Below, piece by piece: positions 8,751 through 53,245 of a stretch of 64,000 nt of DNA. Position numbers and translations under genes: made by a program. This DNA comes from Macrostomum lignano (lineage: Eukaryota): assembly GCA_002269645.1 (NCBI GenBank), contig NIVC01000244.1:13223-77222 (forward strand). The letters are read 5' to 3'. Numbering within the stretch: position 1 is the stretch's first letter; each line of letters starts with the position of its first letter. Below the pieces are notes generated by a model. It saw nothing but the letters and a program-made list of their open reading frames with translations. It made no database searches and was not told the DNA's origin.

Positions 8751-11700
8751 CTGAGAATAGTGGGGACTTGGTAAATAAATATATTTAGCAAAGATATCAG
8801 TAAGACTGAGGCACGCGGAACTGGAAACACCACCAGACGAAAGCTCCTTGAAGACACCATCCGTGAGGACCCATTTCTGAGAAGACACATCTCTGAAGAC
8901 ACAGAATTGAAGACACTCTTGAGGACAAATTTCTAAAGACATTTCTAAAGACACCCCCGAAGCCACATCCTTTAAGACAAATCCCGAAAACACATCCCTG
9001 AAGACACATTCTTGAAGACACATCCCTGAAGACACATCCCTGAAGACACATCCGAAAGACACATTCTTGAAGACACATCCCTGAAGACACATCCCTGAAG
9101 ACACATCCGAAAGACACATTCTTGAAGACACATCCCTGAAGACACATCCGAAAGACACATTCTTGAAGACACATCCCTGAAGACACATTCTTGAAGACAC
9201 ATTCTTGAAGACACATCCCTGAAGACACATTCTTGAAGACACATCCCTGAAGACACATTCTTGAAGACACATTCTTGAAGACACATCCCTGAAGACACAT
9301 TCTTGAAGACACATTCTTGAAGACACATCCCTGAAGACACATTCTTGAAGACACATTCTTGAAGACACATCCCTGAAGACACATTCTTGAAGACACATTC
9401 TTGAAGACACATCCCTGAAGACACATCCCTGAAGACACATCCCTGAAGACACATCCGAAAGACACATTCTTGAAGACACATCCCTGAAGATACATCCCAA
9501 AGACACATTCTTGAAGACACATCCCTGAAGACACATCCGAAAGACACATTCTTAAAGACACATCCCTGAAGACACATCCCTGAAGACACATCTAAAACGG
9601 TACCTAACGGAGTTATTAGGCATGGGAGAGTTTTGATCGGATATCATAGATGTCGATATGAAAAATCAATTATCAATAAGCCATCAGCTCACTTGAACAG
9701 GCCGCGCAAGAAGCCTCTTTTGCCGCCAGACTGCGGCGGCTGAGCATTTAACTGAGTCGCAGGCTGAGGAGTCTGGGGAGGATGCTGATGGTGCTGCCGC
9801 TGCTCCCTAGGCAGACCGGATGGCAGCGGCACAGTAGGTGGCAGAATTGGCGGCAGCGGCACCGGCACAGCCTCCGCCCGATGCTCCATCAGCACCAGAG
9901 CCTGCCGATTGATATGATCGAAGCAGTGCAATCCGCTCTGAGCAGCCGCCCTGAGCACACCAGCCGTGTTCTCATAATCGGCCGATGCGGCTTTATTATG
10001 GTCACTGCCATTGTTGTCGCTGGAGCCGCCGGACAGAGAAGCAGCGGCGGATGAGGAGGACGAGCGGGAGGACGAGGAGTCGTAACCAACGTTGTTGTTC
10101 ACGCTGTAGTACAGCTGCTGCTGCTGCTGCTGGGGACGGCTGGCGCTGCTGAACGGGGCTGCTGTAAAATAATTGCAACAGAAAGATGTTCGCTACTGGC
10201 TACTATCAGTTGAGTAGTAAGATGGTAGGCTCTGGCCATTCACTGCTGCTCAAGCGCTGCCGCCCTATCGCAGCAGGGGGACTGGAGCTAAGATCAGTTT
10301 TCCATTCTATCACTGTGGCTCCCTGTAGGCGTAGGGGGACCCGAGCATACTAACCACAGCCAACTCTGCTTAACTTGCAGCACTGGCCCACTCCAGCTTA
10401 TATTCACTCGCCTAGTTGTGAAGCAAGTTTAAAAACACAAAAATAATTAAATTAAACTTGGGGACTCGAACCTAGGACCACCGACGGGAGTTTCCAGGGA
10501 AGAGTAAAATACCATTAATTAAATGAAACGAAAATTGGGACTCGAACCTAGGACCACCGACAGGGAGCTTCAAGGCTAAGAGTAAATACAATCAAATAAA
10601 TGAAACGAAAATTGGGACTCGAACCTAGGACCACCGACGGGAGCTTAGAGTAAATACCATCAATTAAATGTAACTAAGCTTGAGACTCGAACCTAGGACC
10701 ACCGACCGGGGTTCCAAGGCTGCACCTGCTGTTTCCGACGAAGTAGCCGCCGTAGTAGAACTGGCACCGCAGTCGCTGTTAACATCGGCAGCGACGACTG
10801 CCTCGATGGCTGAACGACGCCTGGCTGGTCGATGGGTGCGCAGCTGCACTACGCTGCCGCAACCTGACGGGGGGCTGGCCACGCTGCTGCGGGGTTAATT
10901 AGCCATTGATTGGGAATCATGGCCGAATGGCTAAATACCGGTTGGGGAAGATATCTGTTGGGGATACCTAAATACCGATTAGGGATGCCTAAATACCGGT
11001 TGGGGAAGATATCTGTTGGGGATACCTAAATACCGATTAGGGATGCCTAAATACCGGTTGGGGAAGATATCTGTTGGGGATACCTAAATACCGATTAGGG
11101 ATGCCTAAATACCGGTTGGGGAAGATATCTGTTGGGGATACCTAAATACCGATTAGGGATGCCTAAATACCGGTTGGGGAAGATATCTGTTGGGGATACC
11201 TAAATACCGATTAGGGATGCCTAAATACCGGTTGGGGAAGACATCTGTTGGGGATACCTAAATACCGATTAGGGATGCCTAAATACCGGTTGGGGAAGAT
11301 ATCTGTTGGGGATACCTAAATACCGATTAGGGATGCCTAAATACCGGTTGGGGAAGATATCTGTTGGGGATACTCAAATACCGGTTGGGGATACCTAAAT
11401 ACCGGTTGGAGATACCTAAATACCGGTTGGAGATACCTAAATACCGGTTGGGGGTACCTAAATACCGGTTGGGGATACCTAAATACCGGTTGGGGATACC
11501 TAAATACCGGTTGGGGATACCTAAATACCGGTTGGGGGTACCTAAATACCGGTTGGGGATACCTAAATACCGGTTGGGGGTACCTAAATACCGGTTGGGG
11601 ATACCTAAATACCGGTTGGGGATACCCAAATACCGGTTGGGGATACCCAATTACCGGTTGGTGATACCTAAATACCGATTGGGGATACCCAAATACCGAT

Positions 11701-14700
11701 TAGGGATGTCTTAATACCGGTTAGGGATACCCAAATACCGATTAGGGATGTCTTAATACCGGTTAGCGGTACCCAAATACCGATTAGAGATACCCACAAA
11801 ATGGCTGGGAAGAACATCTGAAAACCGGTTGGGACGGCACTGAAACACTGAGCAGAGGCAAGCAGCACAAGGAAATCTTACTCTCTATTATTCGCCCGGT
11901 CCTCAAGCAGCAGTTCATCCAGCGAGCAGGACCGCCTCTTTCCGCACTCCTCCTTGGCGTTGCACACTGCGGCGGCCGTTGCGGCGGCGGCTGCGGCTGC
12001 TGCAGCGGCGGCAGCGACTGCATCGCCAATAGTGGCCGAAGATGTCGAAGGTGGAGGCGCTCGAGGAGGCGGTGTTGGCGGTGCCTCAGTCAGCGGTGCC
12101 TCAGTCAGCGGTGTCGCGGCGGCGGGGTGGGGGCAGAGCGTCTGTGGCTTGTCGGCGTGAATCGAAAGCGGCGACCTCCTGCGAGTTGGCAAGTCGGGAT
12201 TGGGCTGTCACTTGGCTTAGCTGCTTAAAAAAAAGCCATTAGAAATTTTTGCATGCCAACATGCGTTAACTGCCACTATGAGTAGAATATGCCGATTAAA
12301 AATTGACATTTGCAAAGATTCTGTCGCTAATTAACGTCGGGTTTCCTTCCTCTTGTAGCCTCATTTTCTGTGCAGGCACACGAATGAGGCAACGTAAGCG
12401 CACCAAAAATTGGGTGAAAAATGATGCAATTTTCCACGAAAAACAGGTACTCGATTTCAGAATTTCATCTATACTAAAATATCAAGAAGCGAAGGGATCT
12501 CGTGGTGCTACTAATATATCTTATATTAGCCAATGTTGATTGCCAACGCAAAACGCGAGTTTTATTATTATTAGTAGTAAACATGCGGCAGCCACAGAAG
12601 CGGAGACAGTGGAAAAATAACCTGCTAACTTGTAAAGCTGGGTGGGGCAGGGTAGATGGAGGAATTTTTTAAAGCTCAATCCAGCTTCCAAGCTCTTAAA
12701 TCGGACACCGATATTGCAAAGTTTAAAGATGGCACACGAGATTAACAAAAAAATATGAATGAAAAGCTGCTAAAGCACTAACTGACTAGCTTTCACTCAA
12801 GACCGTCTCGACAGCGATGATAGCCTCTGAAAAAAAGAGAGAGCAAACAGAAAATCAATAAGCCGTGTAATGAGATTAGCTAATCCGCAGCCGCAGCATT
12901 TTAGCTAAAGCAGAATCAGTTATTAGAGCTTGCGTATTATAAAATGTGCATTGCTAGCGAGTGAGTTCAACTAATCGGTTAGTGTAGTTGCACCGCACCT
13001 TGGCTGTATCCATGGTCACACAATTGGATAAAGCTACCGTTGCTATGCTGTATCCATGGTCACACAATTGGATAAAGCTACCGTTGCTATGCTGTATCCA
13101 TGGTCATACACTTGGATAAAGCTACCGTTGCTATGCTGTATCATGGTCACACACTTGTATAAAGCTACTACCGTTGCTATGCTGTAGTCATGGTCACACA
13201 CTTGGTTAAAGCTACCGTTGCTATGCTGTATCATGGTCACACACTTGTATAAAGCTACTACCGTTGCTATGCTGTAGTCATGGTCACACACTTGGATAAA
13301 GCTACCGTTGCTATGCTTTATCCATGGTCATACACTTGGATAAAGCTACCGTTGCTATGCTGTATCCATGGTCACACACTTGTATAAAGCTACTACCGTT
13401 GCTATGCTGTAGTCATGGTCCCACACTTGGATTAAGATACCGTTGCTATGCTGTATCCATGGTCACACACTTGGATAAAGCTACCGTTGCTATGCTGTAT
13501 CCATGGTCATACACTTGGATAAAGCTACCGTTGCTATGCTGTATCATGGTCACACACTTGTATAAAGCTACCGTTGCTATGCTGTATCCATGGTCACACA
13601 CTTGTATAAAGCTACTACCGTTGCTATGCTGTAGTCATGGTCCCACACTTGGATTAAGATACCGTTGCTATGCTGTATCCATGGTCACACACTTGGATTA
13701 AGATACCGTTGCTATGCTGTAGTCATGGTCCCACACTTGGATTAAGATACCGTTGCTATGCTGTATCCATGGTCCCACACTTGGATTAAGATACCGTTGC
13801 TATGCTGTATCCGAGTTCTACATTCAAGTTCTAACCGCTGTAAAGTTGATTCATCAAGCAGTTTTTAGTCTAGCACAAGTGCTTACCAATCGTGACCTAA
13901 AATAGTTTCTTAAAGATTTCTTATATGCATTTCAGCCCACCTCTCTAACTGAATGACGGATTAGCTTCGTGTATGTATATGTATTTACTGACTAAATGTG
14001 AGGAGAGAAAGGTTGAAAAATAGGAGGGCAAGAGGGAGAGATTAAGGCTCCAGTGCATAGCCAGAAGGACAGCAGGTTATCAAATTAGGCGCCAAGTCAA
14101 ACTAGCCTAGCACCGAAGGCTACCGTAATCAGAGCTAAAGCCTTCTCCTAGCCCTCAACTGCCCAGCCTGCCAACACAGGGTGCGGGATGGATAGAGAGA
14201 AAGTTGAAGAGGAAAGAAAAAGCGCAACACTATACTGATGCTGCTGTTTGTGCCGCTGAAGCAGGTTCCCTTTTGCTTTTTTGTTCAGAATGCTTTAAAC
14301 AACACTATTTTTACACTCATGCGGTTTATTACCGCAATAGTCAATACTCTAATATACAATTTGTTATAATCCAGTGCAATCTCCACCCCCTGCTGAGCCG
14401 AACTAGCTTAATTAGCCTAACCTATATCCATTGCAAAATAAATAGATAGACATGAACTCAACAAAAGACAACAGATGCTCAACTCAATAAATGTAGCAGC
14501 AAAAAGAGAAAAATATCGCATCAGTTAGACACCAGGTACTGACTAAATGTGAGCCTCGGCATAAACTGAATGGAACTCACTGGAGGCAAAGGAGGCGGCT
14601 GTTGCTTTTGCTGTTGCTGTTGCTGCTCCTGCTGTTGCTGCTGCTGCTGAGCTGTGGGCGATGCCAGATGACTGTTCTCCTCGCTAGAGGCGGAAGTCGA

Positions 14701-17700
14701 TGCCGCAGTCGGTCGACCCTCGGCCAGGGCCGGCAGCAGCGGCGGCGAGTGGTGCACATCAGCGCTGACTGTGACGCTGCCGCTGCTGCCAACGCTGCTG
14801 ACTGTGTTGATGCTAGACGCAGGTGGCCAACCGCTGGAGCCGGAGTCCTGCTGCTGATGGTGCCTGCCGTGCTGCGCCCGCCAGTGCTGCTGGGAGCCCG
14901 GCTGCTGCCTCAGCTGACGCCTGGCAATGGACAGGCGGAGGCAGCCGCCCGGGCCGCCGCATTCGCGGATTGCTCGACGCAGAGTGGCCGTCGCTTCCGT
15001 GTTGTTGACGCCTTCCAGCGAGTAGCCGTTCACGGACAGCAGCTGGTCGTTCTCGCGGAGCCGGCCATCCTGTACAAGGAGTTCCAGAGACAGCTTTCTG
15101 CATGAGGTCATGACCCCGCTGACCCCAGTATCTGCCAGTCTGAGGTCATGACCCCGCTGAACCCAGTGTCTGTCAGATACTGCCAGTCTGAGGTCATGAC
15201 CCCGCTGACCCCAGTGTCTGTCAGATACTGCCAGTCTGAGGTCATGACCCCGCTGACCCCAGTGTCTGTCAGATACTGCCAGTCTGAGGTCATGACCCCG
15301 CTGGCCGCTGGCCACAGTGTCTGTCAGATACCGCCAGTCCGAGGTCATGACCTCGCTGATCCCAGTGTCTGTCAGATACTGCCAGTCTGAGGCCATGGCC
15401 TCGCCATAAAACTCAGGGTGCCATAAAGGCCACGAACCTTGTAAGCGGCGCCTCCACTGATGACGCTTTTCACAAAGACGCCGCGGCCGCCGGAGTCGCT
15501 GCTGGCGCTGCCATTGCTGCCGCTCGACAACGGCAAAGATTTGACGCTGACGCCAAGGCTACCAGCCGCAGCATCAGCCAGCGGGATGTCCAAGTTCAGT
15601 ACCAGCCGGTCGGTGTCCTGGGCTGAGCTTGCCGTTGAGGATGCGGCCGCTGCCGCTGCCGCCAATCCAGCGAATGGTTCGCCAATGTCAGCTGCCAGGC
15701 CCAGATACTGCTGGAGGGGGGAGTTGGAATGCTGAATGACTGACTGACTGACTGACTGCCTGCCTGCCTGACTGACTGACTAACTGGCTGGCTGACTGAC
15801 TGACTGACTGACTGACTGACTGACTGCCTGCCTGACTGCCTGACTGGCTGACTGACTGACTGCCTGACTGACTGCCTGACTGGCTGACTGACTGACTGCC
15901 TGATTGACTGACTGACTGACTGACTGACTGACTGACTGCCTGCCTGCCTGCCTGACTGACTGACTGACTGACTGCCTGCCTGACTGCCTGACTTGCTGGC
16001 TGACTGACTGACTGACTGACTGACTGACTGACTGCCTGCCTGACTGGCTGACTGGCTGACTGACTGCCTGACTGACGAATATCAAAATCCAAATGATCAA
16101 TTCCTAATTGAAACTCATAACAAAGGGCAGCTGGGAATAACTAATCAAAAGACTCAGAATTCCGCGCATAGTGACTAATGCCTGCGCATCTGGTGCTGCA
16201 AGTGAAATTCAGGCCTGAATAAAGTAAGATCCGAAACCATATCCATATCAACATCCATATCGTTATACTCGCACATTTATGATGGCATCTTCTTTTTTGC
16301 CTAATTTGAAAAATTTCAAAATTGGCAATGCTCATTAAAACGCGATGGGAGTACATATGCCGTATGTATATATATATAACGCTCATACATATATCTATAA
16401 AGCTGTAAGAATCGCATGCAATAGTAATGACCTACCAATCATCTCACGAACGCAGACTGTCCACTCACTCCTTTACTGCCTCTGTCATTCACTCTCTTCC
16501 CCGCATCTGTCACTCACTACTTCACCGCATCTGTCACTCCTACTTCACTGCATCTGTCACTCACTACTTCACCGCATCTGTCACTCACTACTTCACCGCA
16601 TCTGTCACTCATTCTCCCGCATCTGTCACTCATTCTCCCGCATCTGTCACTCACTACTTCACCGCATCTGTCACTCACTACTTCACCGCATCTGTCACTC
16701 ACTACTTCACCGCATCTGTCACTCATTCTCCCGCATCTGTCATTCACTACTTCACCGCATCTGTCACTCACTACTTCCCCGCATCTGTCACTCACTCTCT
16801 TCCCCGCATCTGTCACTCACTACTTCACCGCATCTGTCACTCACTACTTCACCGCATCTGTCACTCATTCTCCCGCATGTCACTCACTACTTCACCGCAT
16901 CTGTCACTCATTCTCCCGCATTTGTCACTCACTCCTACTTCGTACTGGCCTACGTACGACGCACTACGGCCTACGGAAAGTCGCTCTCACCGACTTTTCC
17001 CGACATGTCACTGTCTTTCCCCCATTTATATATTCGTGTTTGCGATTTGCACTTTTCTGCGTGTACATGGTTTGATCTTTCTTATTCAAGCGCACTCTTA
17101 TGTACAGTGCAGCCGTTTCCGTCCTAGGTATGGGGGCTGGCTTGAGCCCCATGCTTAAAATATGTCTCGCACGGTGCATGGTTTGATGCGAAGATTGTGT
17201 CGCAAGTGCGTGCCTTTGACTTGTCATTTAATACGAAGATACGAAGCGAATGTGTTTTATGACGTGGCGTGGCTATTCATCATGGCAAATCCAGTCTCGG
17301 CCCGGCTGCACCAGACACAGCAGAAACACGCAAAAAGCGCTTCTACGGCGCGTCCCTGCTGAATAGCCAGTTTGCGCGCAAATAATCTCGCATCAGTCCG
17401 CCGACGTGCCCTTTCATCGCACCCTTCCGCACTTTTATCCCGCACTGTGTGCTGTATATGCGATTCACTGATTTCAAAATAGATTCGCCTTGAACCGCCT
17501 GCCTCCCACTGCTGCCTGGATCCGCGAAGTGGATTACGAAGGGAAGTTGAAAGGAACATGGCTTTGTAGAGCTGGCTGACAGATACAGATTGCTAGCATA
17601 TGACTGTCCATACGTCTGTCTTATGTGTCTGCTCGTCTGTCTGTCGTTATGCCTGTCTGCCTCTCCAGTCATTCAGTCAGTCTGTCTTAGCATTTTGATG

Positions 17701-20700: not shown

Positions 20701-23700
20701 GCCCAACAGACAATATAGAAGTTGCAAGGCAAAGGTATGGAGACCCAACCTGCAGCGTGTAGCAAAAACCCCGCATTTACAGTGAAAGCATATATCTGAT
20801 ATACTCTTACAAAAAATGTTGCATTGCCCAATGCCATGCGAAGAGGAAGAGAGGGGGGGTAGAAAAATTGAAAGAGAGAAGTTCATTGACACGCGAGCCA
20901 TCCATCTTAACACACTATAAAACGAATAGCAATGAAAAACACTGCTACACCCAGCAGTAATATAGTAGTAGTAGTAGTAGTAGTAGTAAAGCAATAAAGC
21001 AACCCGATCGTGATACCCGAAACGCCAAAAGTAATCAGAGAATCTTAATCCAAGATCTCAAATCCCAGTTGAGCCCTGGATACTGAGAATACTCGGGCAC
21101 GTTGGCAAGCTGCAGATGATAGAGTAGCAACTGTGGGGGCATGACAGATTTGGATTGAATTTTTTCAGCTTGTCAGACTAGCAGATATCTAGTCTAGGCA
21201 GACAGGCTGCCTAACAAGAGACGCAGATAAATTATGAAGCCAGTTTTCGTTCCAACGCTCAAGGTTGATGTCTGCAGCTTCACGCGATTGACGATTCAGA
21301 GTTGTTTCTCGCAAACTGCGGCAACTCCTTTTAGAAAGCATTTTAGCACATTGCAACGCTTTTTTTGCGTAATCACTGGGGTCCTATCCTGATAATCCTG
21401 ATCTTCACTTCATGGAAATCGATGTTTAAGCATGATTTCAGTGAGCTCATAAATTGAATAACATCACTGAGATATAGAGAGTCTACTATGAAAGAGGTTG
21501 CTGCTGGTATCCTTCTTTGTACTGATGTCTACTATATGGTTGTGGATCTAGGTTGACCTAAATTGATTTTCTATTCACAGTCTGTCTTTGTCCTAAAACG
21601 CCTATACTTATTCAATTTTGGATTCGAAGTACGAGCGTATTTAGAAGGGGAAAGGGTCAGGGGTGTCTCCTTGTTCACAACTTGTTCAGCTCTTCATCTC
21701 GGCCATGTCTTATTCACTTTTTCAACTCTACCGATACTATACTGCCGCCACCGCTGCCAAACAGTCTATCTATGAATACCAATGAAAGCAGGCCAGCAGA
21801 TGTGGGGCGGCTGGCGGAGGGGAAGGGCGAAGTCAGATCCTAGAGGGGAGATTCTGTCTGGCAGGAGACAGAAATATGGTAAGGAGAGCTAAGCGGATCC
21901 GGGAGGGATCAAAAAGGCTGAGAGCGGATGAGAACAAGACACGGGCAACCCGGCCCGCCCTGCACACTTCCGGACCAAGAAGTCAAGGAGATCTACATGT
22001 AGATCTATGGGGGGGGGGCGTAGCCCAGTTGTCTAGCGCGGCGCTCTGTGTCAGCGGCCCAGGCTCGATTCCAAATGCAGTCAAATTATTTCGGGGCTAA
22101 ATTGGAATTGCGGCTTGGCTCTGCTCGTGCAATTAACGGCCTTGAGGGCAAACCCCCAAGGCAAGTATTTTTCTTGCCTTGACTGCATTGAGCAGTCCAT
22201 TGTGCTTAATTAGAGTAATAAAACACCTCAAAACTGTCATAAGGAGTTGCTACTCCCAAGTTATAGATCTAAGAGCTCCCTGTCTGGCTAAGTGCATCCC
22301 TCTACTTATCTCTCTACTAATCTCCATCGCACTCCAGCCAGTGAATGAATAGCTTGCGTAGGTCCTCAGTCTCCTGATCAGTATCAGAGCTTGAAAGCAT
22401 GCCAATTGAAACCCGTCGAACGTTTCACCCGGAATTTTTTCCGGAATTTTGTGATCCGGGCCCGATTTTTAATTGATTTCCGGGTGAAGGCCCGGATCAG
22501 CTTTTTTGGCCCGGAACAGCCCCTTGTTCCGGAAAAAAATCCGGAAATATGATCCGGAAAATTTTCGGGAAAAGGAAAGCTGTTCCGGTCTGATTTTCCG
22601 GAATTTTTCACCCGGAACACTATGGAATTCTGGGTGTAGACCCGAATTTCAGTAGTGTTCCGGGTGAAAATGTTCCGGGTGAGATTTCGGGAATTGAGTC
22701 GGAATTCCCTAGTGATCCGGACCAACTGATCCGGAAAATTCACCCGGATCAGCTCCCTTGACCCGAATTTCAGCCAAGTTCCGGGCGAAGCTGATCCGGG
22801 AAAATTTCGGGACTTGAGTCGGAATTCCCTAGCGATCCGGACCAAATAATCCGGAAAATTCACCCGGATCAGCTCCCTTGACCCGAATTTCAGCCAAGTT
22901 CCGGGCGAAGCTGATCCGGGAAAATTTCGGGACTTGAGTCGGAATTCCCTAGCGATCCGGACCAAATAATCCGGAAAATTCACCCGGATCAGCTCCCTTG
23001 ACCCGAATTTCAGCCAAGTTCCGGGCGAAGCTGATCCGGGAAAATTTCGGGACTTGAGTCGGAATTCCCTAGTGATCCGGACCAAATAATCCGGAAAATT
23101 CACCCGGATCAGCTCCCTTGACCCGAATTTCAGCCAAGTTCCGGGCGAAGCTGATCCGGGAAAATTTCGGGACTTGAGTCGGAATCAATCCGGCATCCAT
23201 TATATAAGTTCCATGGGGATTTTGAGAGGAAGCCTCCGATGGAAAACCGCTGAATACAGACCCCAGCAAATGGCTATCCCATCAGGCAATCCCTGGCATC
23301 CATTTGGTCAACGGCGCTAATTCCTCTTGGAAAGCGAGGGGTAATAAAGCCTCGAAATTGCAATGTGAATTGATCTGCTTTTCGGCGGCTCTGTAGCGTC
23401 CGTAATGTGAGGCTGAGCCCATCCTCCGTACAGGTGACAATTGAAAAATTGTTGCGCCCTGTTTGTGTGCGAGAGGTTTGACTTCCACTGGCATGTAGTC
23501 TATCACAGCTGCTTAGTGTGTCAACGGGCTGAATGATTCTATCGTCATATTTGACGCTTAGAAGCATAAAATCAGCCAACCATATTGTTTGGCACAGCTG
23601 GGTGTCTAGACGGAGACTGTGGCATGGTTCCAAATAGCTCTAACTGGCCCAGTATGCAAAGCAGCTTTCCTATTAAGATAGACGCTAATCCGATTTTTGT

Positions 23701-26700
23701 CGGTACATGCTTCCAGTGGTTTGTCTAAGGCGTTTGCAGTTGCACCAGCCGTGAGCAGATCACGTCTAGAGTAGTCTATACGGACTACTATGGTCGGTAA
23801 CCATATCGTGTGGCTCAAGGCAGCTGATAAGCTGACCTGCGATGGATAATCAATCCTCGCTTCTGTTGTGGCTCAAGGCAGCTGATAAGCTGACCTGCGA
23901 TGGATAATCAATCCTCGCTTCTGTTGTGGCTCAAGGCAGCTGATAAGCTGACCTGCGATGGATAATCAATCCTCGCTTCTGTTGTGGCTCAAGGCAGCTG
24001 ATAAGCTGACCTGCGATGGATAATCAATCCTCGCTTCTGTTGTGGCTCAAGGCAGCTGATAAGCTGACCTGCGATGGATAATCAATCCTCGCTTCTGTTG
24101 TGGCTCAAGGCAGCTGATAAGCTGACCTGCGATGGATAATCAATCCTCGCTTCTGTTGTGGCTCAAGGCAGCTGATAAGCTGACCTGCGATGGATAATCA
24201 ATCCTCGCTTCTGTTGTGGCTCAAGGCAGCTGATAAGCTGACCTGCGATGGATAATCAATCCTCGCTTCTGTTGTGGCTCAAGGCAGCTGATAAGCTGAC
24301 CTGCGATGGATAATCAATCCTCGCTTCTGTTGTGGCTCAAGGCAGCTGATAAGCTGACCTGCGATGGATAATCAATCCTCGCTTCTGTTGTGGCTCAAGG
24401 CAGTTGATAAGCTGACCTGCGATGGATAATTAATCCTCGCTTCTGTTGTGGCTCAAGGCAGCTGATAAGCTGACCTGCGATGGATAATCAATCCTCGCTT
24501 CTGTTGTGGCTCAAGGCAGCTGATAAGCTGACCTGCGATGGATAATCAATCCTCGCTTCTGTTGTGGCTCAAGGCAGCTGATAAGCTGACCTGCGATGGA
24601 TAATCAATCCTCGCTTCTGTTGTGGCTCAAGGCAGCTGATAAGCTGACCTGCGATGGATAATCAATCCTCGCTTCTGTTGTGGCTCAAGGCAGCTGATAA
24701 GCTGACCTGCGATGGATAATCAATCCTCGCTTCTGTTGTGGCTCAAGGCAGCTGATAAGCTGACCTGCGATGGATAATCAATCCTCGCTTCTGTTGTGGC
24801 TCAAGGCAGCTGATAAGCTGACCTGCGATGGATAATCAATCCTCGCTTCTGTTGTGGCTCAAGGCAGCTGATAAGCTGACCTGCGATGGATAATCAATCC
24901 TCGCTTCTGTTGTGGCTCAAGGCAGCTGATAAGCTGACCTGCGATGGATAATTAATCCTCGCTTCTGTTGTGGCTCAAGGCAGCTGATAAGCTGACCTGC
25001 GATGGATAATCAATCCTCGCTTCTGTTGTGGCTCAAGGCAGCTGATAAGCTGACCTGCGATGGATAATCAATCCTCGCTTCTGTTGTGGCTCAAGGCAGC
25101 TGATAAGCTGACCTGCGATGGATAATCAATCCTCGCTTCTGTTGTGGCTCAAGGCAGCTGATAAGCTGACCTGCGATGGATAATCAATCCTCGCTTCTGT
25201 TGTGGCTCAAGGCAGCTGATAAGCTGACCTGCGATGGATAATCAATCCTCGCTTCTGTTGTGGCTCAAGGCAGCTGATAAGCTGACCTGCGATGGATAAT
25301 CAATCCTCGCTTCTGTTGTGGCTCAAGGCAGCTGATAAGCTGACCTGCGATGGATAATCAATCCTCGCTTCTGTTGTGGCTCAAGGCAGCTGATAAGCTG
25401 ACCTGCGATGGATAATCAATCCTCGCTTCTGTTGTGGCTCAAGGCAGCTGATAAGCTGACCTGCGATGGATAATCAATCCTCGCTTCTGTTGTGGCTCAA
25501 GGCAGCTGATAAGCTGACCTGCGATGGATAATCAATCCTCGCTTCTGTTGTGGCTCAAGGCAGCTGATAAGCTGACCTGCGAGGGGTAATAAAGCCTCGC
25601 TTTGATGAGACAACTTATCTGCTTTTCGGCGGCTCTGTAGCGTCCGTAATGTGAGGCTGAGCCCATCCTCCGTACAGGTGACAATTGAAAAATTGTTGCG
25701 CCCTGTTTGTGTGCGAGAGGTTTGACTTCCACTGGCATGTAGTCTATCACAGCTGCTTAGTGTGTCAACGGGCTGAATGATTCTATCGTCATATTTGACG
25801 CTTAGAAGCATAAAATCAGCCAACCATATTGTTTGGCACAGCTGGGTGTCTAGACGGAGACTGTGGCATGGTTCCAAATAGCTCTAACTGGCCCAGTATG
25901 CAAAGCAGCTTTCCTATTAAGATAGACGCTAATCCGATTTTTGTCGGTACATGCTCCATTGGTTTGTCTAAGGCGTTTGCAGTTGCACCAGCCGTGAGCA
26001 AATCACGTTGTCACGGCTGCTAACAAGAGTACCGGATCCCGGTATTCCGCCACTCTCTGGAAGGGGCCTTTGGATAGAAAGGCCCAAGCGATTGAAGCGA
26101 CTGCTTTGGCGCGTGTGCCATCGCAGCAACCGCAGCCGTCACGATGCCCGTCATGCACCACAATGATGGATCAGATTCGGGCCCAAGGCGAAGCCGAGGA
26201 CGAACTGTGTAAGTTTTTTATGCATATACTAGAAGACGTTAGCAGCCTCGTATATATATAAGTGTTGTTGATTCTTAAGTTTGAATCTGCTTCGCCACTC
26301 TCCTCATTTTTATGTACTTAATAGGCCATCAATTGAGCGGAGTTCGTGAAAAGCTGTCGGAGGCTCAAGCCGAAAATCGTCAGATGAAAGCTGAAGTTCT
26401 TCGATTGGAAGCTATCTCCGCTACGAGCTCGTCGGAATCCGACACGACCGTGGCGAGAAGCCAGGCAGTGCTCTTTCAATCTCGGCCAGCCGCAGAGCGG
26501 CAAAAGAAGGCGGACCAGGTGAAGGCGCGACGAATCGCCAGTGCTGCCGAAAATGAGGGGCCGACTTCTGGAAACATATATTTCCAGACGGCGAGCTACT
26601 CGAGGAGTGAAATGCGGGCGATGTCCAAGATCGAGTGCATAACACCACCACCGCATTTATTTGCAATTAATTTCTAGCTTTTTGTTAAGGCCAAATTTGC

Positions 26701-29700
26701 TGGATTCGATTTCATTAGAAACGCTCTTCGAGACATTGGCTGTCTACATTTATGAGCCCTGATAGGTCCTGGAAAATGAGACAAAAGTCGTTCCTTAATT
26801 TTTGCGGAGATCTTTACAATTCTTAAGCAAGTGAATAGACAAGTCAGCTGACTTGAGTTAACTAGCTAATTAGCTGTATAGCGAGTGACCCACCTGACAG
26901 ATGCAATCAGAGGTAGGCGATGGGGATCCCTGAAGAGTAGCCAATGTCGCGATAAGGTATATAAAACCGTATACGGCTTCAAAAAAAGTTAATGGTAGCA
27001 TCGAAGTCCAGCTGCCCATCCGAGTGACATTCAGAAGGTCAGCATTTTTTGTTTCTGAAAGTACGTAGAAGTGCATAGAAATATACGATTTGCAGTTGTG
27101 CACAACTGAATTCAGTATTTCTGTTCGTGGACGGCTAAATCGAATTCGATTCAATTCGTAGTCGTGGAAAATGTATGGAACAATGACCCGTTCTTTATTT
27201 AATTTTCTGCTACTGTGATAAGCCTAAGATTTGGCTGCAAATCCGGTTCAATCATCCAGAATTCACCTGGATTCGTGTGCTAATCCGGTTCACTCTCCCG
27301 GAATTCGCCCGGATTTGTGTGCTGATCCGGTTCACTCGCCCGGAATTAGCCCGGATTTGTGTGCTGATCCGGTTCACTCGCCCGGAATTAGCCCGGATTT
27401 GTGTGCTGATCCGGTTCACTCGCCCGGAATTGTGTGCTGATCCGGTTCACTCGCCCAGAATTAGCCCGGATTTGTGTGCTGATCCGGTTCACTCGCCCGG
27501 AATTAGCCCGGATTTGTGTGCTGATCCGGTTCACTCGCCCGGAATTGTGTGCTGATCCGGTTCACTCGCCCAGAATTAGCCCGGATTTGTGTGCTGATCC
27601 GGTTCACTCGCCCGGAATTAGCCCGGATTTGTGTGCTGTTCCGGTTCACTCGCCCGGAATTGTGTGCTGATCCGGTTCACTCGCCCGGAATTGTGTGCTG
27701 ATCCGGTTCACTCGCCCGGAATTGTGTGCTGATCCGGTTCACTCGCCCGGATTTGTGTGCTGTTCCGGTTCACTCGCCCGGAATTGTGTGCTGATCCGGT
27801 TCACTCGCCCGGAATTGTGTGCTGATCCGGTTCACTCGCCCGGAATTGTGTGCTGATCCGGTTCACTCGCCCGGAATTGTGTGCTGATCCGGTTCACTCG
27901 CCCGGAATTGTGTGTTGATCCGGTTTTCGTCGCCCGGAATTTAGCCCGGATTTGTGTGCTGATCCGTTCCACTCGCCCGGATCGCACCCGGAACAGTCAC
28001 CGGATTTTTTTAGCGATCCGGGTCTATTTTCCGGAATTTTTCTTTTTGATCCGGAAATTTCGCCCGGATTCTGTAAACTTTCGTTACAGATCCGGAATTT
28101 CCACCCGGATCAGATTGCATTACTGGAATAGGAAAAAATTCCGGGTGAACGCAAAAAATTCCGGGCGAAATTCCGGGTGAAAAGTTCGACGGGAATGAAG
28201 CCAGAAGTATCGATGAAGACTGGGGGGACGCTCAACCTGGAATCACTTATTAGTTATTACTCGGAAAAGCATTTGCCCCGAGAGTCTCTTGAAAATTTAG
28301 CCAAGCGGCAATAGTAAAGTCAATGCATGACACTCGATGCTGCTCAGTTGCCTCAAGAGTCGAGGCGGGCGGCAGGCGGAGCAGTCCATGCTCAGTGCAT
28401 GCTTCGATGCTTCAGTTGCACGATGTTTCCCGAAAAATCTTTTTTCGTATTGACAACACTCAAATTGATAGCTGATAGTTACATTGCCAATATTCGTAGA
28501 ACTTTATACACTATATGCTATTGCGCGGCGCATCTGAAGGCTGCGTACGACTGTTTAATCTAAGGACTGGAGGGTGCCCACACAAACCCTGAATTACCCC
28601 AGCTAACGCTGGCACCCATTTTATAGCTGGGTGAACTGAAGCAATGCTAGACAATTTTAAGTGTCTTGCTCAAGGACACAAACTTCAGTTCCGCGTGGAT
28701 CGAGAATCGAACCCCCGACCTTAAAGTCGTGAGTCCGAAGCTCTAACCACTAGGTTACAACCCCTTGGTATCTGATAGCTATCCTTTAACTATCCGTAGA
28801 TGCCCTTAGACTATCCGTAGATACCCTCAAGACTATCTGTAGATACCCTTAGACTATCCGTAGATACCCTTAGACTATCCGTAGATAACCTTAGACTATC
28901 TGTAGATACCCTTAGACTATCCGTAGATGCCCTTAGACTATCCGTAGATGCCCTTAGACTATCCGTAGATACCCTTAGACTATCTGTAGATACCCTTAGA
29001 CTATCCGTAGATACCCTTAGACTATCCGTAGATGCCCTTAGACTATCCGTAGATGCCCTTAGACTATCCGTAGATGCCCTTAGACTATCCGTAGATAACC
29101 TTAGACTATCCGTAGATACCCTTAGACTATCCGTAGATGCCCTTAGACTATCCGTAGATACCCTTAGACTATCCGTAGATGCCCTTAGACTATCCGTAGA
29201 TGCCCTTAGAGGCTTAGACTATCCGTAGATGCCCTTAGACTATCCGTAGATGCCCTTAGACTATCCGTAGATACCCTTAGACTATCCGTAGATAACCTTA
29301 GACTATCCGTAGATAACCTTAGACTATCCGTAGATAACCTTAGACTAACCGTAGATAACCTTAGACTATCCGTAGATGCCCTTAGACTATCCGTAGATAA
29401 CCTTAGACTATCCGTAGATAACCTTAGACTATCCGTAGCTGCCCGACTATCTGTAGATACCCTTAGACTATCCGTAGATACCCTTAGACTATCCGTAGAT
29501 ACCCTTAGACTATCCGTAGATAACCTTAGACCATCCGTAGATCCGTAGACCCTTACATTATTTGTAGACACCGTAAGATTATTCTGAGATACTTTTAGAT
29601 CATTAAAATAGATTTCTGTACGCTGCCAATAAAAAAATTGATGAGCATGAATTATGAACTCAAGAAATACATGCAATATTAAATTGTGCCTACAACTGCA

Positions 29701-32700
29701 GCATTCTTATCTACTCACACTGCACTGCAACACACATACAGAACTGGCTACAGAGCACGCAGCGGTACTCAAGAGTGCAGCCCAGATTTCCAGCCAAATG
29801 CAATAAGGCTGCAGACATTATCAAGTTTACGAGCTTTTTATATGAACCAGTTTTACTCGTAGATACTGTCTATGAATAATAAAACAATATACGCAATAAT
29901 GCTGTTTCCAGCGCAGAGACGGACGGCACATAATTAAATATTGCTCTTTTATTGTCGCCAAAAAGAATCTCCCACTGGTACTTTTGTCAAGCCTGTGGGG
30001 AATTTCGCACAAGGAACCGATGGGTTGCTATGAGCAACTTGGCCCAAGGAAATCTTGAACGAGAAGCTGGATTTTCTGGAAGCTGGAAGAAACGTCGGTT
30101 CCCCCGTCCTACGAGTACTTGAGTAGTTCTTGTGTAAAACACGCATCATCTGTCCTACGAGTACTTGAGTAGTTCTTGTGTAAAACACGCATCATCTGTC
30201 CTACGAGTACTTGAGTAGTTCTTGTGTAAAACACGCATCATCTGTCCTACGAGTACTTGAGTAGTTCTTGTGTAAAACACGCATCATCTGTCCTACGAGT
30301 ACTTGAGTAGTCATTGTGTAAAACACGCATCATCCGTCCTACGAGTACTTGAGTAGTCCTTGTGTAAAACACGCATCATCCGTCCTACGAGTACTTGAGT
30401 AGTCCTTGTGTAAAACACGCAGCATCCGTCCGAGTACTTGAGTAGTCCTTGTGTAAAACATCATCATCCGTCCGAGTACTTGAGTAGTCCTTGTGTAAAA
30501 CACGCATCATCCGTCCTACGAGTACTTGAGTATTTCTTGTGTAAAACACGCATTTATCAAAGTTCTATTATGGTTCGAAATCTGATTATATTTACCGAGA
30601 CAGTGAGAATCTATTTAGCTTTAGAATGAGACTAAGATTCGGCCTTCTACCATTGCGTGCAAACAGTAAAACCTGAAGTCTACCGGGTAAGGGGGTAACT
30701 GTCTGAGAAATCAAGGCTTTATATGGGAAGACTTTCGCACTCCCAGAATCTGGTTTAAGGCCTCCTTAGATTCAGCAGCCCCTGTCCCGCCATCTTCCGG
30801 CGGTCAAGTCAGTGTAATAAGAGTACAAGCAAGCAGCCCGGCAGTGGCCAGTACAGGACAATGCCAAGTGTCTGACAATTGAGCCCATTTACTGTACTAT
30901 ATGTCTGCCTCCTCATTCTTTTCATCATGGTTACAAAAAAATTTTGACTGATTTTTTTGCGTGCGCACACAAAAAAATCAAACCGTTGAGCATGGTTGAG
31001 CATGATTTCTATTGACTGGATTCGACAGCTATATATTAACATACTTTTCTTCTGGCTAGCTTGCTGCAAAGCTCACCTGATTGACATCTATTTTTTTCTG
31101 TCAGCGTCTGCATTCTTTTTAAAATGCCGTCATTCAATTTGTATGGTCAGTTCAAATACTGTTGACTAGCACAGAATATTCAGCATTTGTAATGATAGAA
31201 TTACAATAGAAATAGTACGTGTAAAAGAGCTGCACCCCAAGCCTTCGGGCTTGGCCCTCATGAGCGAGAGCCGCTCCCCGAGCAAATATATGCAGAACAT
31301 ATTTAATAAATGAATTAACAACTAACCTCATCGCCGCCCTGACCAAGATGGTTAATGACTGGTGCAGGCGGCGGCTGCGGTGGCGGCGGCGGCGGCTGGC
31401 CACCCACCCGAGACACCAGCATCTTGACGGTGGCGCCAACAGGTATAGCGCGCAACAGACTAACAGCGTCCGCTTGAGTCTGGCCAGTCAGTTTAAATCC
31501 GTCCACCTCTAGCAGCTGATCGCCAGCCTTCAGCCTGCCGTCCTTAACAGCCGAACCTTTGCCTAGAACATTCTTCACATAGATCCCATTGCTATTATCC
31601 TGCGACTCTTTAGCTGTAACAGAGAAGCCCAATCCGTCGGCTGATTTGCGTATATCGATAGTGAAAGTGTGCACAATAGAGCCAGCATCCGCAGTGCCGT
31701 CGGTCGGGCCGGATGCGGGGGCGGATGCGGGGGCGGGATCGACAGCAGGGCGCCGATTATTATTTAACAACGGTTTCCGCAGTCTAGGCATAACTGGAGG
31801 CGGCGATGGCGATCGAGGCGGAGTCGATGGCTTCAACTGCACTGCCGGAGGCGGCGGCGGCGGCGGCGGGGACGAAGAAGACGGAGGTGCCGCAGCGGTG
31901 GCAGCAGCCTTAACGACAGTTTTAGTATTACTAATAGGCACATACGGTGGAGGCGGAGGCGGCGGCGGGGGCGGCGGTGGCGGTGCAACTAGCACAGGTG
32001 AGTCGGATCTTTCAGAGTTTTCTGGCTGCTGCATCATAATCGACTGAGTGTGAGCTCGAGCAATTTCGTCTAGATTGCGGCATAGTTGCTCCTGCGGTTG
32101 CTGCTGCTGTTTGAGAATGCGCAGATCTAAGCGCAACTCTTGCACCGCTTCGCGCAACAATTCCTGAGCTCTGTTGGGGCGGTTTGAGTTTCACGCATGT
32201 ACCTGCCTAGTTTTTTCTTTAAATTTTACCTATATAAATAAAAAAAAACGGCCACAATTTACAGTCACACCAGTGACCATAGACAATACGGTCACAATGC
32301 AAGGTCACACCGATGACCCTAGACAATACGGTCACAATGCAAGGTCACACCGATGACCCTAGACAATACGGTCACAATGCAAGGTCACACCGGTGACCAT
32401 AGACAATACGGTCACAATGCAAGGTCACACCGGTGACCATAGACAATACGGTCACAATGCAAGGTCACCCCGGTGACCATAGACAATACGGTCACAATGC
32501 AAGGTCACACCGGTGACCCTAGACAATACGGTCACAATACAAGGTCACCCCGGTGACCATAGACAATACGGTCACAATGCAAGGTCACACCGGTGACCCT
32601 AGACAATACGGTCACAATGCAAGGTCACACCGGTGACCATAGACAATACGGTCACAATGCAAGGTCACCCCGGTGACCATAGACAATACGGTCACAATGC

Positions 32701-34157
32701 AAGGTCACACCGGTGACCCTAGACAATACGGTCACAATGCAAGGTCACACCGGTGACCATAGACAATACGGTCACAATGCAAGGTCACACCGGTGACCCT
32801 AGACAATACGGTCACAATGCAAGGTCACCCCGGTGACCATAGACAATACGGTCACAATGCAAGGTCACACCGGTGACCATAGACAATACGGTCACAATGC
32901 AAGGTCACACCGATGACCCTAGACAATACGGTCACAATGCAAGGTCACACCGATGACCCTAGACAATACGGTCACAATGCAAGGTCACACCGGTGACCCT
33001 AGACCCTAGACTCGCGGTCACAGGCCTAGGTACAGTTAAGTACTACTCTAACTAGCCCAACCCAACCCAGCCAGCAGACTCACTGTTGGAATGACACGCC
33101 CAACAAAGAGTTGCCATTGATTTCCACAATTCGATCGCCCGGTCTCAATCGGCCGTCCTTGGCAGCCGAACCGCCGGCACCCAGGGCCTGAATTTCTAGG
33201 CCTGCAGTTCGTTGACTGCGATCTAAAAACGGTTTTGTTGTCATGCCGACCGCATTCCTAGCAGCGCCGGCCGATGCCCGGTCAATAGAGATGCGAATCA
33301 GATAACTGGCCGACTCAAACTCTTGAGCATCGTCCGATTCGAGTTCAGCCTCGCCAGGGGGAGAATCGTATCGCTCAGCCTCGCCGTCCGACTCGGGCAG
33401 TGTAGGCAGAAAATCCGCAGGCGGAGGCGGCAGAAGAGACGGATGATGCAGCTGATGCTGCTGCTGAAACTCCGTCAGAAGCAGATCGTCTGTGCCATCA
33501 GCTGTAGACGCCTCGGACGATGCTGGCCGCGTCTGGGCGATGAGCTGCACAGGAAATATTGATTTAAGTCATTCAGGGAGACTGCACTTTATCAATGGGA
33601 GATTGCACTTTTTCTATGGGAGATTGCACTTTCTCTATGAGAGATTGCAATTTCTCTATGGGAGATTGCACTTTCTCTATGAGAGATTGCACTTTCTCTA
33701 TGAGAGATTGCACTTTCTCTATGGGAGATTGCACTTTCTCTATGAGAGATTGCACTTTCTCTATGAGAGATTGCACTTTCTCTATGGGAGATTGCACTTT
33801 CTCTATGAGAGATTGCACTACGCTGTTGACCCAACTCACCATTTCTCGATCGTCCAGAACATCGGCAACCCGGTCGTCCCAGTCAAGAATTCCGCCATCC
33901 CTGGCCAGAGTCACGCAGGTGACGGTAAACGGCGGCTCAGCCAAGGTGGCGGCGGTGCCATCGCCAGCATCAGTCGGTGGTGCGGTGGCTACCCCGGCAG
34001 CTGGAGAAGAGGTCGAGTTTGATGATGAAGACGCCGCCGCCGCGGCAGCTGATCTGAATCGACTGGTTGCCTTGGCAACCAGATCGCGTATGGTGATCTC
34101 GCCGGCGCCGCATGGCACCACCAGCTTTGTGGAACCGAAGCTCACCGTCACTTTCAT
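8231..34157 (-). CDS. par-3: Partitioning defective 3 (Par-3/Bazooka) polarity scaffold, 9 coding exons: 33840-34157, 33084-33544, 31327-32170, 15438-15731, 14581-15069, 11882-~12204, 10726-10886, 9693-10161, 8231-8750
   Basis: The N-terminus MKVTVSFGSTKLVVPCG...DGGILDWDDRVADVLDD matches the Par-3 oligomerisation domain. Three PDZ domains: PDZ1 GLEIQALGAGGSAAKDGRLRPGDRIVEING, PDZ2 IRKSADGLGFSVTAK...[30 protein letters not shown], PDZ3 LGVSVK...GVFVKSVISGGAAYK|DGRLRENDQLLSVNG. KRRSCSLDELL resembles the 14-3-3 site and KRGFLRGLFK|LRR resembles the polybasic motif. All junctions are GT-AG with matching phases. The exon 6 acceptor and exon 7 donor are weak and less certain. Confidence 0.93.
8850..9592. 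repeat. 14-bp minisatellite (GAAGACACATCCCT / GAAGACACATTCTT), par-3 intron 8
   Basis: Directly visible. Confidence 0.95.
9693..10161 (-). CDS. par-3: par-3 exon 8
   Basis: Acceptor TTTTACAG|CA; donor AA|GTGAG; ends in GGKRGFLRGLFK. Confidence 0.8.
10459..10711 (-). repeat. Four spaced copies (about 70-76 bp period) of a tRNA T-arm/B-box-like motif (GGTCCTAGGTTCGAGTCCC)
   Basis: GGACTCGAACCTAGGACCACCGAC at about 10461, 10539 and 10615, and a variant at 10683. Confidence 0.8.
10726..10886 (-). CDS. par-3: par-3 exon 7
   Basis: Acceptor CCCCGCAG|C (phase 2 matches); the donor G|GTGCAG is weak but phase-compatible with exon 8. Confidence 0.55.
10935..11790. repeat. Compound minisatellite: 60-bp higher-order units, then 21-bp units (GGGATACCTAAATACCGGTTG)
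   Basis: Directly visible. Confidence 0.95.
11882..12204 (-). CDS. par-3: par-3 exon 6 (poly-Ala, RRSCSLDELL motif); 5' boundary uncertain
   Basis: Donor GA|GTAAG. The in-frame acceptor GTGACAG|CCC at 12204 is weak; the stronger acceptor at 12220 leads to stops in all three frames. Confidence 0.6.
13000..13812. repeat. 43-46-bp minisatellite (CCGTTGCTATGCTGTATCCATGGTCACACACTTGGATAAAGCTA)
   Basis: Directly visible. Confidence 0.95.
14581..15069 (-). CDS. par-3: par-3 exon 5 (second half of PDZ3, Q/P-rich region)
   Basis: Acceptor TTGTACAG|GATGGC; donor CCA|GTGAGT. Confidence 0.9.
15100..15395. repeat. 48-bp minisatellite filling most of par-3 intron 4
   Basis: GAGGTCATGACCCCGCTGACCCCAGTGTCTGTCAGATACTGCCAGTCT, about 6 copies. 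Confidence 0.92.
15438..15731 (-). CDS. par-3: par-3 exon 4 (first half of PDZ3)
   Basis: Acceptor CATTCAG|CAT; open frame; donor AAG|GTTCGT, phase 0. Confidence 0.85.
15735..16076. repeat. Imperfect (GACT/GCCT)n microsatellite abutting the exon 4 acceptor
   Basis: Directly visible. Confidence 0.95.
16480..16935. repeat. 21/24-bp minisatellite (CCGCATCTGTCACTCACTACTTCA)
   Basis: Directly visible. Confidence 0.94.
18735..19330. repeat. 16/20-bp minisatellite (GTGGGTGGTTTCCTAAGAGA)
   Basis: Directly visible. Confidence 0.94.
19885..20575. repeat. 25-bp minisatellite (TATCCAGTCTATGCAGCTGGCGCCT)
   Basis: Directly visible. Confidence 0.95.
22011..22167 (+). mobile_element. tRNA-derived SINE family A, partial (5' part) diverged copy
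   Basis: Reverse-complement match to the copies at 43070-43434 and 55242-55614 (e.g. GGCTTGGCTCTGCTCGTGCAATTAACGGCCTTGAG); A-box-like TAGCCCAGTTG and B-box-like GGCTCGATTCC. Confidence 0.85.
22690..23185. repeat. 120-bp tandem repeat (about 4 copies) in the left subterminal region of the TIR element
   Basis: GACTTGAGTCGGAA recurs at 22811, 22931, 23051 and 23171. Confidence 0.93.
23334..26008. repeat. About 430-bp direct repeats (23334-23765 and 25579-26008) enclosing a 58-bp tandem array
   Basis: Near-identical sequence from GCGAGGGG(G)TAATAAAGCCTCG to ATCACGT in both copies. Confidence 0.92.
23809..25582. repeat. 58-bp tandem array, 30 full copies plus 1 partial, almost perfectly homogeneous
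   Basis: Unit TGTGGCTCAAGGCAGCTGATAAGCTGACCTGCGATGGATAATCAATCCTCGCTTCTGT; (25549-23809)/58 = 30; only about 3 substitutions seen. Confidence 0.97.
26070..26677 (+). CDS. Putative spliced cargo/accessory gene of the TIR element (coiled-coil-like protein); exons ~26070-26208 and 26325-~26630 or beyond
   Basis: Two consecutive plus-strand ORFs are joined in frame by donor T|GTAAGT (26209) and acceptor TAATAG|GC (26324), giving ...AEDELCHQLSGVREKLSEAQAENRQMKAEVLRLE...; start and end not resolved. Confidence 0.5.
27235..27960. repeat. 31/42-bp tandem subterminal repeats (GTGTGCTGATCCGGTTCACTCGCCCGGAATT...) in the right arm of the TIR element
   Basis: Directly visible. Confidence 0.93.
28517..28764 (-). 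mobile_element. tRNA-derived SINE family B with a CORE-like central domain
   Basis: Reverse complement aligns with 42019-42258; head GGGGTTGTAACCTAGTGGTTAGAGC...GGTTCGATTCTC has A and B boxes. Confidence 0.88.
28790..29540. repeat. 21-bp minisatellite (CCCTTAGACTATCCGTAGATA/G)
   Basis: Directly visible. Confidence 0.95.
30105..30550. repeat. 46-bp minisatellite (GTCCTACGAGTACTTGAGTAGTTCTTGTGTAAAACACGCATCATCT)
   Basis: Directly visible, about 9-10 copies. Confidence 0.94.
31327..32170 (-). CDS. par-3: par-3 exon 3 (end of PDZ1, Pro-rich linker, PDZ2)
   Basis: Acceptor CCAACAG|A completes the phase-2 codon, giving SFQQAQELLREA; donor GAG|GTTAGT. Confidence 0.9.
32270..33000. repeat. 40-bp minisatellite filling most of par-3 intron 2
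   Basis: AGACAATACGGTCACAATGCAAGGTCACACCGGTGACCAT, about 18 copies. Confidence 0.96.
33084..33544 (-). CDS. par-3: par-3 exon 2 (end of N-terminal domain, most of PDZ1)
   Basis: Acceptor TGTGCAG|CTCATC; donor CA|GTGAGT, phase 2. Confidence 0.9.
33585..33815. repeat. 21-bp minisatellite filling most of par-3 intron 1
   Basis: GAGATTGCACTTTCTCTATG(A/G), about 11 copies. Confidence 0.95.
33840..34157 (-). CDS. par-3: par-3 exon 1 (N-terminal oligomerisation domain)
   Basis: ATG at 34157; donor ATG|GTGAGT, phase 0. Confidence 0.93.
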
Positions 34158-41145: not shown

Positions 41146-50352
<9,207 letters not shown>

Positions 50353-52558: not shown

Positions 52559-52616
52559 TATATTTTTTATAACTATTCTTTTTCATCCATCAGTTTGTTA
52601 TACACAATAGTACATT

Positions 52617-52767: not shown

Positions 52768-53245
52768 AATCGGGCGTTAAATGTCATTGTTTAGCAATTT
52801 GACGATCATTATTCACATTTTTAATGCAGAACAATCCACTACTACAAACAATGCATTGTCTGTAGGATCGTCAAACAGAAAAACAATGCAAAGAATCAGC
52901 GGTCGCAGCACGTGACAACGATTTGTCTATGGCTCGCGCCTACCGGCGCTCGCCAGACAATCGTTATCACGCACTGGGACCGCTGATTATTTATCCATTA
53001 ACTGCCCGCTAATTTGCATTAAAGTAAGTTTGACAATGGATAAATTGTCAGGGCTTGCGCTCGGTAGGCGCGAGCCATAGACAAATCGTTGTCACGTGCT
53101 GCGACCGCTGATTCTTTGCATTGTTTTTTTATTTGACGATCCTACATACAATGCATTGTTTGTAGTAATGGATTGTTCTGCATTAAAAATGTGAATATTG
53201 ATCGTCAACTTGTTAAACAATGACAATCGGGCGTTAAATGTCATT
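52768..53245. mobile_element. Foldback element (about 160-bp inverted arms) flanked by a 21-bp direct repeat
   Basis: Arms at about 52783-52945 and 53063-53224; AATCGGGCGTTAAATGTCATT at 52768-52788 and 53225-53245. Confidence 0.75.

Follow-up and report, generated by a model that had tools for sequence, protein, structure and literature searches.

A 58-bp minisatellite between direct repeats in a non-autonomous DNA transposon of Macrostomum lignano, probably carried as a passenger

We analyzed a stretch of 64,000 nucleotides of animal DNA from Macrostomum lignano (contig NIVC01000244.1, positions 13,223 to 77,222; hereafter the window). The feature under study is a module in which a homogeneous array of 58-bp tandem units stands between two direct repeats of ~431 bp. 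Open reading frames (ORFs) on the minus strand of the window encode the Par3 N-terminal domain and PDZ domains (Table 1), and the module is therefore located in an intron of a Par-3 homologue. A further ORF, at 14521-15396, is PDZ-like by eye only.

The module is embedded in a complete non-autonomous DNA transposon with terminal inverted repeats (TIRs) of 42 nt that are 88% complementary. A 2-bp target-site duplication, AA, stands on either side of the element, at 22410-22411 and 28194-28195. Its 120-bp subterminal array also varies in copy number among members of the family. The two-exon ORF downstream of the module, listed in M. lignano as a hypothetical protein, has 98% identity to the protein PAA55192.1 of this species and falls into a 90% cluster that comprises 11 M. 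lignano proteins. No Pfam family reached the cut-off for its product, and an exhaustive phmmer search returned only three fragments 93-97% identical to it and a weak match to a repetitive, low-complexity protein of 1176 aa. The ORF is an orphan and not a transposase.

The array has the top score of Tandem Repeats Finder (TRF) among the ~40 arrays of the window. Pattern counting found 30 full units (23809-25548), 28 of them exact, followed by a partial and diverged 31st unit that stops after ...CCTGCGA and fuses at GCGA (25579-25582) with the right repeat. The left and right repeats share an identical head of 21 nt, GCGAGGGGTAATAAAGCCTCG, after which come a divergent patch of 17-18 nt and ~392 nt in which there are 3 differences. 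Two short hairpins form in each unit, and the first 24 nt of the right repeat are identical to the second hairpin at 20 of 24 positions, in register. The linker between the left repeat and the array is confined to array-bearing copies of the element, and the rest of the element contains no significant match to it. An earlier note on this stretch had described 30 near-identical 58-bp double-hairpin units between direct repeats of ~430 bp; TRF and the pattern count bear out this description, and every stem that the note listed is present at the position given there. No further copy of the module was found within the 64-kb window, and collections of metagenome and viral contigs gave 0 matches to the 58-bp unit. 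All frames of the array contain stops, and no ORF of at least 120 aa crosses it except a minus-strand ORF of the repeat that reaches the last units. This ORF of 121 aa has no Pfam match and no homologue among 5.8 billion proteins, and the ~431-bp repeat is not recognizably coding.

Table 1. Positions of the module, its carrier transposon and the Par-3 domains in the window.
Feature	Positions (strand)	Details
Complete non-autonomous TIR DNA transposon	22412-28193 (+)	5782 bp; in an intron of the Par-3 homologue
Left terminal inverted repeat	22412-22453 (+)	begins CCCGTCGAACGTTTCACCCGGAATTTT
Left subterminal array	22639-23185 (+)	120-bp units, 4.6 copies, ATCCGG/CCGGAA-rich (TRF, repeat analysis)
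Unique segment upstream of left repeat	23186-23333 (+)	single occurrence in every copy
Left direct repeat, ~431 bp	23334-23765 (+)	432 nt; 'L' patch AAATTGCAATGTGAATTG; marker TTCCAGTGG
Linker	23766-23808 (+)	43 nt, between left repeat and array; two small palindromes, AGTAGTC..GACTACT and ATGGT..ACCAT
58-bp minisatellite	23809-25602 (+)	TRF: 30.9 copies, 99% matches, 0% indels, score 3539
Right direct repeat, ~431 bp	25579-26008 (+)	430 nt; 'R' patch CTTTGATGAGACAACTT; marker TCCATTGG
Two-exon orphan ORF	26163-26677 (+)	exons 26163-26208 and 26325-26677; GT-AG intron; 132 aa; predicted coiled coil
Right subterminal arrays	27241-27993 (+)	31/42-bp units; CCGG motifs inverted relative to left arm
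Right terminal inverted repeat	28152-28193 (+)	
PDZ domains	31315-32160 (-)	ORFs
Par3 N-terminal domain	33573-34157 (-)	ORF

Using the proteins of the ORF cluster, 16 further loci were fetched from assembly GCA_002269645.1, giving 17 copies with that of the window. The further copies are ~99% identical and have the same termini. No two stand at the same site, introns of unrelated genes harbor most of them, and none of the 16 loci is the Par-3 intron. The flanks differ between all copies, and all 15 copies with both ends have their own matching 2-bp duplication (AA, AT, TG, TA, CT, GT, and AG across the copies). An autonomous partner was absent from the window and from the fetched loci. One of the copies, L003, is located in an intron of a Peptidase_C1 gene and corresponds to the database protein P0013 (427 aa), in which the transposon ORF is joined to a cathepsin-L-like peptidase; this suggests exonization of the transposon.

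The copies fall into three structural forms. In nine of the 17 (L001, L006-L009, and L011-L014, the last truncated by the contig end) there is a single ~431-bp segment, without linker or unit, and the length of the array-less element is ~3.1-3.7 kb. Six copies have the layout repeat-linker-array-repeat with identical junctions, and their full units number 30 in the window, which is the largest array sampled, 5 in L002, 9 in L016, 11 in L005, 21 in L004, and 24 in L010. The other two, L003 and L015, have three repeats and two arrays, with unit numbers of 5+7 in one and about 7+7 in the other. The module occupies the same internal position in 8 of the 17 copies, as expected if it is carried by the TIR transposon, which the earlier note had considered. 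In ~324 kb, every occurrence of the 58-bp unit was within the element, in one orientation and at this one position.

The sequence markers of the repeats point to exchange between them in L003, where the middle repeat combines the right repeat's 5' patch with the 3' marker TTCCAGTGG and the linker of the left repeat. Unequal crossing-over of a right with a left repeat would be expected to yield such a hybrid. The single-repeat copy L006 bears the left-repeat marker, and the mosaic markers of L004 and L015 would fit exchange or conversion. The shared flanks offer 13 informative sites, at which copies with and without the array are mixed; this suggests that gain, loss or recombination has occurred repeatedly. 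The tree of these flanks, built to examine whether array-bearing copies have a single origin, has those 13 sites only, and the extraction of L015 included an insertion or a misplaced boundary. When L013:7268-7330 is compared with L012 and with 23355-23372 and 25600-25616 of the window, the patch of 17-18 nt is seen as two very different alleles, both of them present in single-repeat copies. The dimorphism is therefore not simply a by-product of the duplication, and the alleles exist independently of the array.

The folding of the unit and of the repeat was compared with that of dinucleotide shuffles. As RNA, the unit folds at -20.5 kcal/mol into its two hairpins (z -2.8 on the plus strand and -2.9 on the minus strand), and as DNA its z-scores are -3.8 and -3.6 on the two strands. 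The non-array part (23268-23808) gave z-scores of -4.6 (+) and -3.9 (-), and the 433-nt repeat alone -4.95 (+) and -3.86 (-). For 36 non-repeat windows of 433 nt from the same 64 kb, the mean z was -0.7 (SD 2.0) and 3 of 36 were at or below -5.5, which places the foldability of the repeat within the top tenth for the region. The few very negative background scores are probably due to foldback elements; two MITE-like foldbacks (MITEs are miniature transposable elements with inverted repeats) lie at 51973-52565 and 52782-53225, with inverted arms of 148 and 164 nt (96-97%) and spacers of 297 and 116 nt, respectively. As a control for the unit, 24 distinct arrays of the window, with two to six units each, were tested against shuffles. 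Seven of them had z-scores of -2.8 or below on at least one strand and four on both, and the 120-bp, 48-bp, and 21-bp arrays fold much more strongly than the 58-mer. The 120-bp subterminal array was rated the strongest of the window arrays (z -5.7 and -6.8). The introns of the Par-3 homologue on the minus strand (window 1-34200) hold ~25 separate arrays with periods of 20-120 bp, each of 0.3-1.9 kb; z-scores were -9.2 for the 21-bp array at 33578-33819 and -5.5 for the 48-bp array at 15132-15404. The stems of the module are real and non-random when compared with shuffles, yet unexceptional for this genome. Both strands fold about equally, and the hairpins are therefore DNA palindromes rather than a strand-specific RNA.

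We conclude that the module is very probably a passenger tandem duplication in a young, non-autonomous cut-and-paste TIR transposon of M. lignano. The transposon and its copies with their target-site duplications were observed directly, as were the variation in unit number, the hybrid repeat and the three structural forms; the order of events (duplication, then expansion), the molecular process and a contribution, if any, of the hairpins are inferred. The starting form would be an array-less element with one ~431-bp segment. In one lineage this segment would have been duplicated in tandem, with ~100 bp of palindrome-rich junction DNA (the 43-nt linker and a 58-bp unit) between its two copies, and the 58-bp unit would then have been multiplied and repeatedly resized. 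Replication slippage, unequal sister-chromatid exchange, and error-prone repair synthesis when the element is recopied after excision are candidate processes. Such synthesis from the sister copy after excision is drawn from the gap repair of P elements and Ac/Ds. Recombination between the two long repeats would give rise to the triple-repeat, double-array forms, and the reciprocal product would be single-repeat forms without array. The module would move passively with the element. The two hairpins of each unit, as DNA palindromes, may favor slippage, and nothing suggests that they encode a functional RNA. The earlier note had offered rolling circle or slippage for the amplification: array length does vary between copies (0, 5, 9, 11, 21, 24, 30, and 5+7 units), and this variation and the hybrid triple-repeat forms agree with a process of the slippage or unequal-exchange type, whereas a rolling circle is not needed and nothing points to it. 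Simple and tandem repeats account for 15% of the M. lignano assembly (PMC5730564), and this figure and the ~40 arrays of the window form a context that agrees with a passenger minisatellite.

Several observations weigh against this interpretation or restrict it. The single-repeat copy L013 has a right-type patch, and most single-repeat copies could be either ancestors of the array-bearing form or revertants from it. When the linker and the unit were aligned locally to the array-less element, the scores were no better than those of shuffled sequence; the sole hint that the unit arose from within the element is the in-register match of hairpin 2 to the repeat head. The folding of the ~431-bp repeat clearly surpasses that of its shuffles (z about -5). 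Copies with an annotated ORF are over-represented in the sample, and the unit counts were taken from long-read assemblies.

The earlier note had suggested for the double-hairpin units and the stem-rich repeats a structured non-coding RNA or single-stranded DNA element. Such an element would be ribozyme-, retrozyme- or viroid-like, with an array produced by rolling circle. We consider this very unlikely. The unit and the repeat do fold better than their dinucleotide shuffles, which was one of the checks proposed in the note (unit z -2.8 to -3.8), and the adjacent ORF is annotated from transcripts; moreover, the start of P0013 coincides with the right repeat's 3' edge, so that transcripts may extend as far as the module. 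On the other hand, the two strands fold about equally, as DNA palindromes do, and the fold of the unit is equaled or exceeded by that of 7 of the 24 minisatellites in the window. Rfam models gave no match in the whole window at gathering thresholds, and permissive scans of both module halves yielded only chance-level matches (E ≥ 0.13) to small nucleolar RNAs or CRISPR repeats (clustered regularly interspaced short palindromic repeats), none of them credible. Hammerhead models had no match at E ≤ 10 in 23150-23990 or 25480-27260. The note had itself found no canonical hammerhead core, and we confirm this: the CUGANGA heptamer occurs twice in the whole element, neither time with GAAA downstream, and is absent from the module. 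Flatworms carry hammerhead-bearing repeats, and the module is like animal retrozymes in having hairpin-rich direct repeats of a few hundred bp around a non-coding region; unlike retrozymes, it has no ribozyme motif by Rfam or core search, its repeats lack a target-site duplication of their own, and it moves with a DNA transposon. Covariation gave no support either: an RNAalifold alignment of 26 repeat copies had compensatory changes in 0 of 135 pairs and a covariation term of -0.11 kcal/mol, with almost no power at ~99% identity, and the ~10 variant sites among 126 units lie roughly half in loops, while the stem variants are one-sided (C-to-T wobbles or breaks), again with little power at 99% identity. 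More telling against a functional RNA than these covariation tests are the array-less copies and the unconstrained unit number. The array is wholly absent from 9 of the 17 transposed copies and is therefore unnecessary for mobility.

The same array-less copies, which are at least as numerous as the array-bearing ones, bear on the proposal that the array is under selection as a cis-acting part of either the transposon or the host gene, such as a set of protein-binding sites, a regulator in the Par-3 intron or a source of small RNAs. Copies with the array have reached at least 8 sites by transposition and remain highly homogeneous, and extra transposase-binding sites in tandem repeats have been proposed for Galileo (cited in PMC4079207). 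However, the unit lacks the CCGG motifs that fill the ends of the element and unit number is unconstrained, from 0 to 30, which makes selection of this kind highly improbable. There is equally little probability that the array or its length is an artefact of assembly. Long perfect tandem arrays are hard to assemble, and the M. lignano assembly has been described as difficult and partly redundant (PMC5730564), but the same layout with identical junctions recurs at 7 other loci with differing unit numbers and private unit variants. Precise junctions that recur at independent sites are not what an artefact would produce, although the exact count at the window locus could still be wrong. The ~431-bp repeats could also be viewed as the long terminal repeats (LTRs) of a small nested LTR element resembling a terminal-repeat retrotransposon in miniature (TRIM), with linker and array as its internal part, single-repeat copies as solo LTRs and triple-repeat copies as recombinant tandems. 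The one-, two-, and three-repeat forms do match the spectrum known from LTR elements, but none of four hallmarks was found. The repeats end in GC...GT and not in TG...CA; no 4-6-bp target-site duplication surrounds them (GGAAA precedes the left copy and TGTCA follows the right copy); CTAGAGTAGTC, which follows the left repeat, is not a tRNA primer-binding site; and array DNA rather than a polypurine tract precedes the right repeat. In addition, conserved transposon sequence adjoins the repeat without a break on either side in every copy. The nested element was rejected because these hallmarks are missing, and its probability is extremely low. Finally, the units and the foldable ~431-bp repeat might be more than passengers, either as hairpin DNA that drives template slippage on recopying or as transcribed hairpins that feed a small-RNA pathway. 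We regard this as improbable; if true, the family would generate minisatellites naturally, and would still be doing so, in a genome with 15% tandem repeats.

Tandem arrays within non-autonomous DNA transposons are already documented, and the passenger module described here is a new but ordinary member of this class. The features of a transposon-borne minisatellite were all found: homogeneous units within the range of 10-100 bp, TIRs with target-site duplications, dispersed copies, a variable unit number, and no transposase. A close parallel is Tetris (PMC4079207), a non-autonomous DNA transposon of foldback-like type that occurs in Drosophila virilis and D. americana and contains internal tandem repeats. 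Like Tetris, the M. lignano element is a modular TIR element without transposase, occurs in many rearranged forms and has arms with tandem sub-repeats. Both have an internal repeat of variable copy number with a short similarity to neighboring sequence (37 bp at ~80% in Tetris; 24 nt, 20/24, here), suggesting a local duplication in each. They differ in that the ~220-bp repeats of Tetris lie in its TIRs and have seeded kb-size satellites outside the element (PMC4079207), whereas the 58-bp array is in the middle domain, between the ~431-bp direct repeats, and none was seen outside the element. Tandem repeats are also found on other non-autonomous transposons, such as Xmix/Xstir and miDNA4 of Xenopus, and in the center of the oyster Helentron CgHINE and of DINE-1 (PMC9659126; PMC7492417). 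As in these MITEs, Helentrons, and DINE-1, the array was born in a mobile element, is dispersed with it, varies in copy number and is homogenized within arrays. The carrier here, in contrast to MITEs or rolling-circle elements, is a TIR element of 3-6 kb with an orphan ORF, and, unlike the Xenopus, oyster, and DINE-1 cases, the array is bracketed by a duplicated segment of ~431 bp that recombines into higher-order forms.

The superfamily of the carrier was considered from its ends and duplications; the 132-aa ORF was dropped as a guide, being an orphan without informative relatives. In Foldback elements, long inverted arms of tandem sub-repeats surround a middle domain. Here, both arms have tandem sub-repeats with CCGG motifs in inverted orientation; the units of the two arms differ (120 bp versus 31/42 bp), and only the terminal 42 nt form a clean inverted repeat. 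Tc1/mariner elements make a fixed TA duplication. ISL2EU elements make a fixed AT duplication (PMC4482050). Both were ruled out by the dinucleotide varying between copies. The duplication of Foldback elements is 8-10 bp (Tetris, Mutator-related; PMC4079207), compared with 2 bp in every two-ended copy here. The variable 2-bp duplication fits the range of 2-4 bp given for CMC (CACTA/Mirage/Chapaev) elements (PMC4482050). CMC termini are 5'-CA...TG-3' (PMC12730594), and the termini here, CCCGTCG...CGACGGG, do not match them.

Further elements were noted elsewhere in the window. A Tc1/mariner-like element at 59537-61098 contains an ORF with a DDE_3 domain (60143-60628), framed by inverted repeats of ~150 nt that are 96-100% complementary, and DUF5641 and integrase-like ORFs at 62106-63478 on the minus strand probably represent a fragment of a retrotransposon of the BEL/Pao type. 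A class C G-protein-coupled receptor (7tm_3) domain in an exon-like ORF at 47761-48222 marks a second host gene downstream of Par-3. At 10461-10706 there is a 77-bp tandem repeat whose unit start, GGGACTCGAACC, looks like the complement of the 3' arm of a tRNA; the source of the repeat may be a short interspersed nuclear element or a tRNA. ARAGORN found no tRNA in the window. Long near-perfect microsatellites are present as (TGA)85 at 42814-43069 and (AGTC)208 at 44054-44885.

With the candidate structured RNA or ribozyme removed, the feature is a transposon-borne minisatellite. It is of modest value in that it defines, for the model species M. lignano, a young family of non-autonomous DNA transposons, with at least 17 copies that are ~99% identical, most of them in introns, and this family is probably still mobile. 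The module has been caught at several stages, from absence through 5 to 30 units to higher-order duplication, and so provides a concrete example of how this genome could gain its very high minisatellite load; the loci are useful as a set for measuring array instability.

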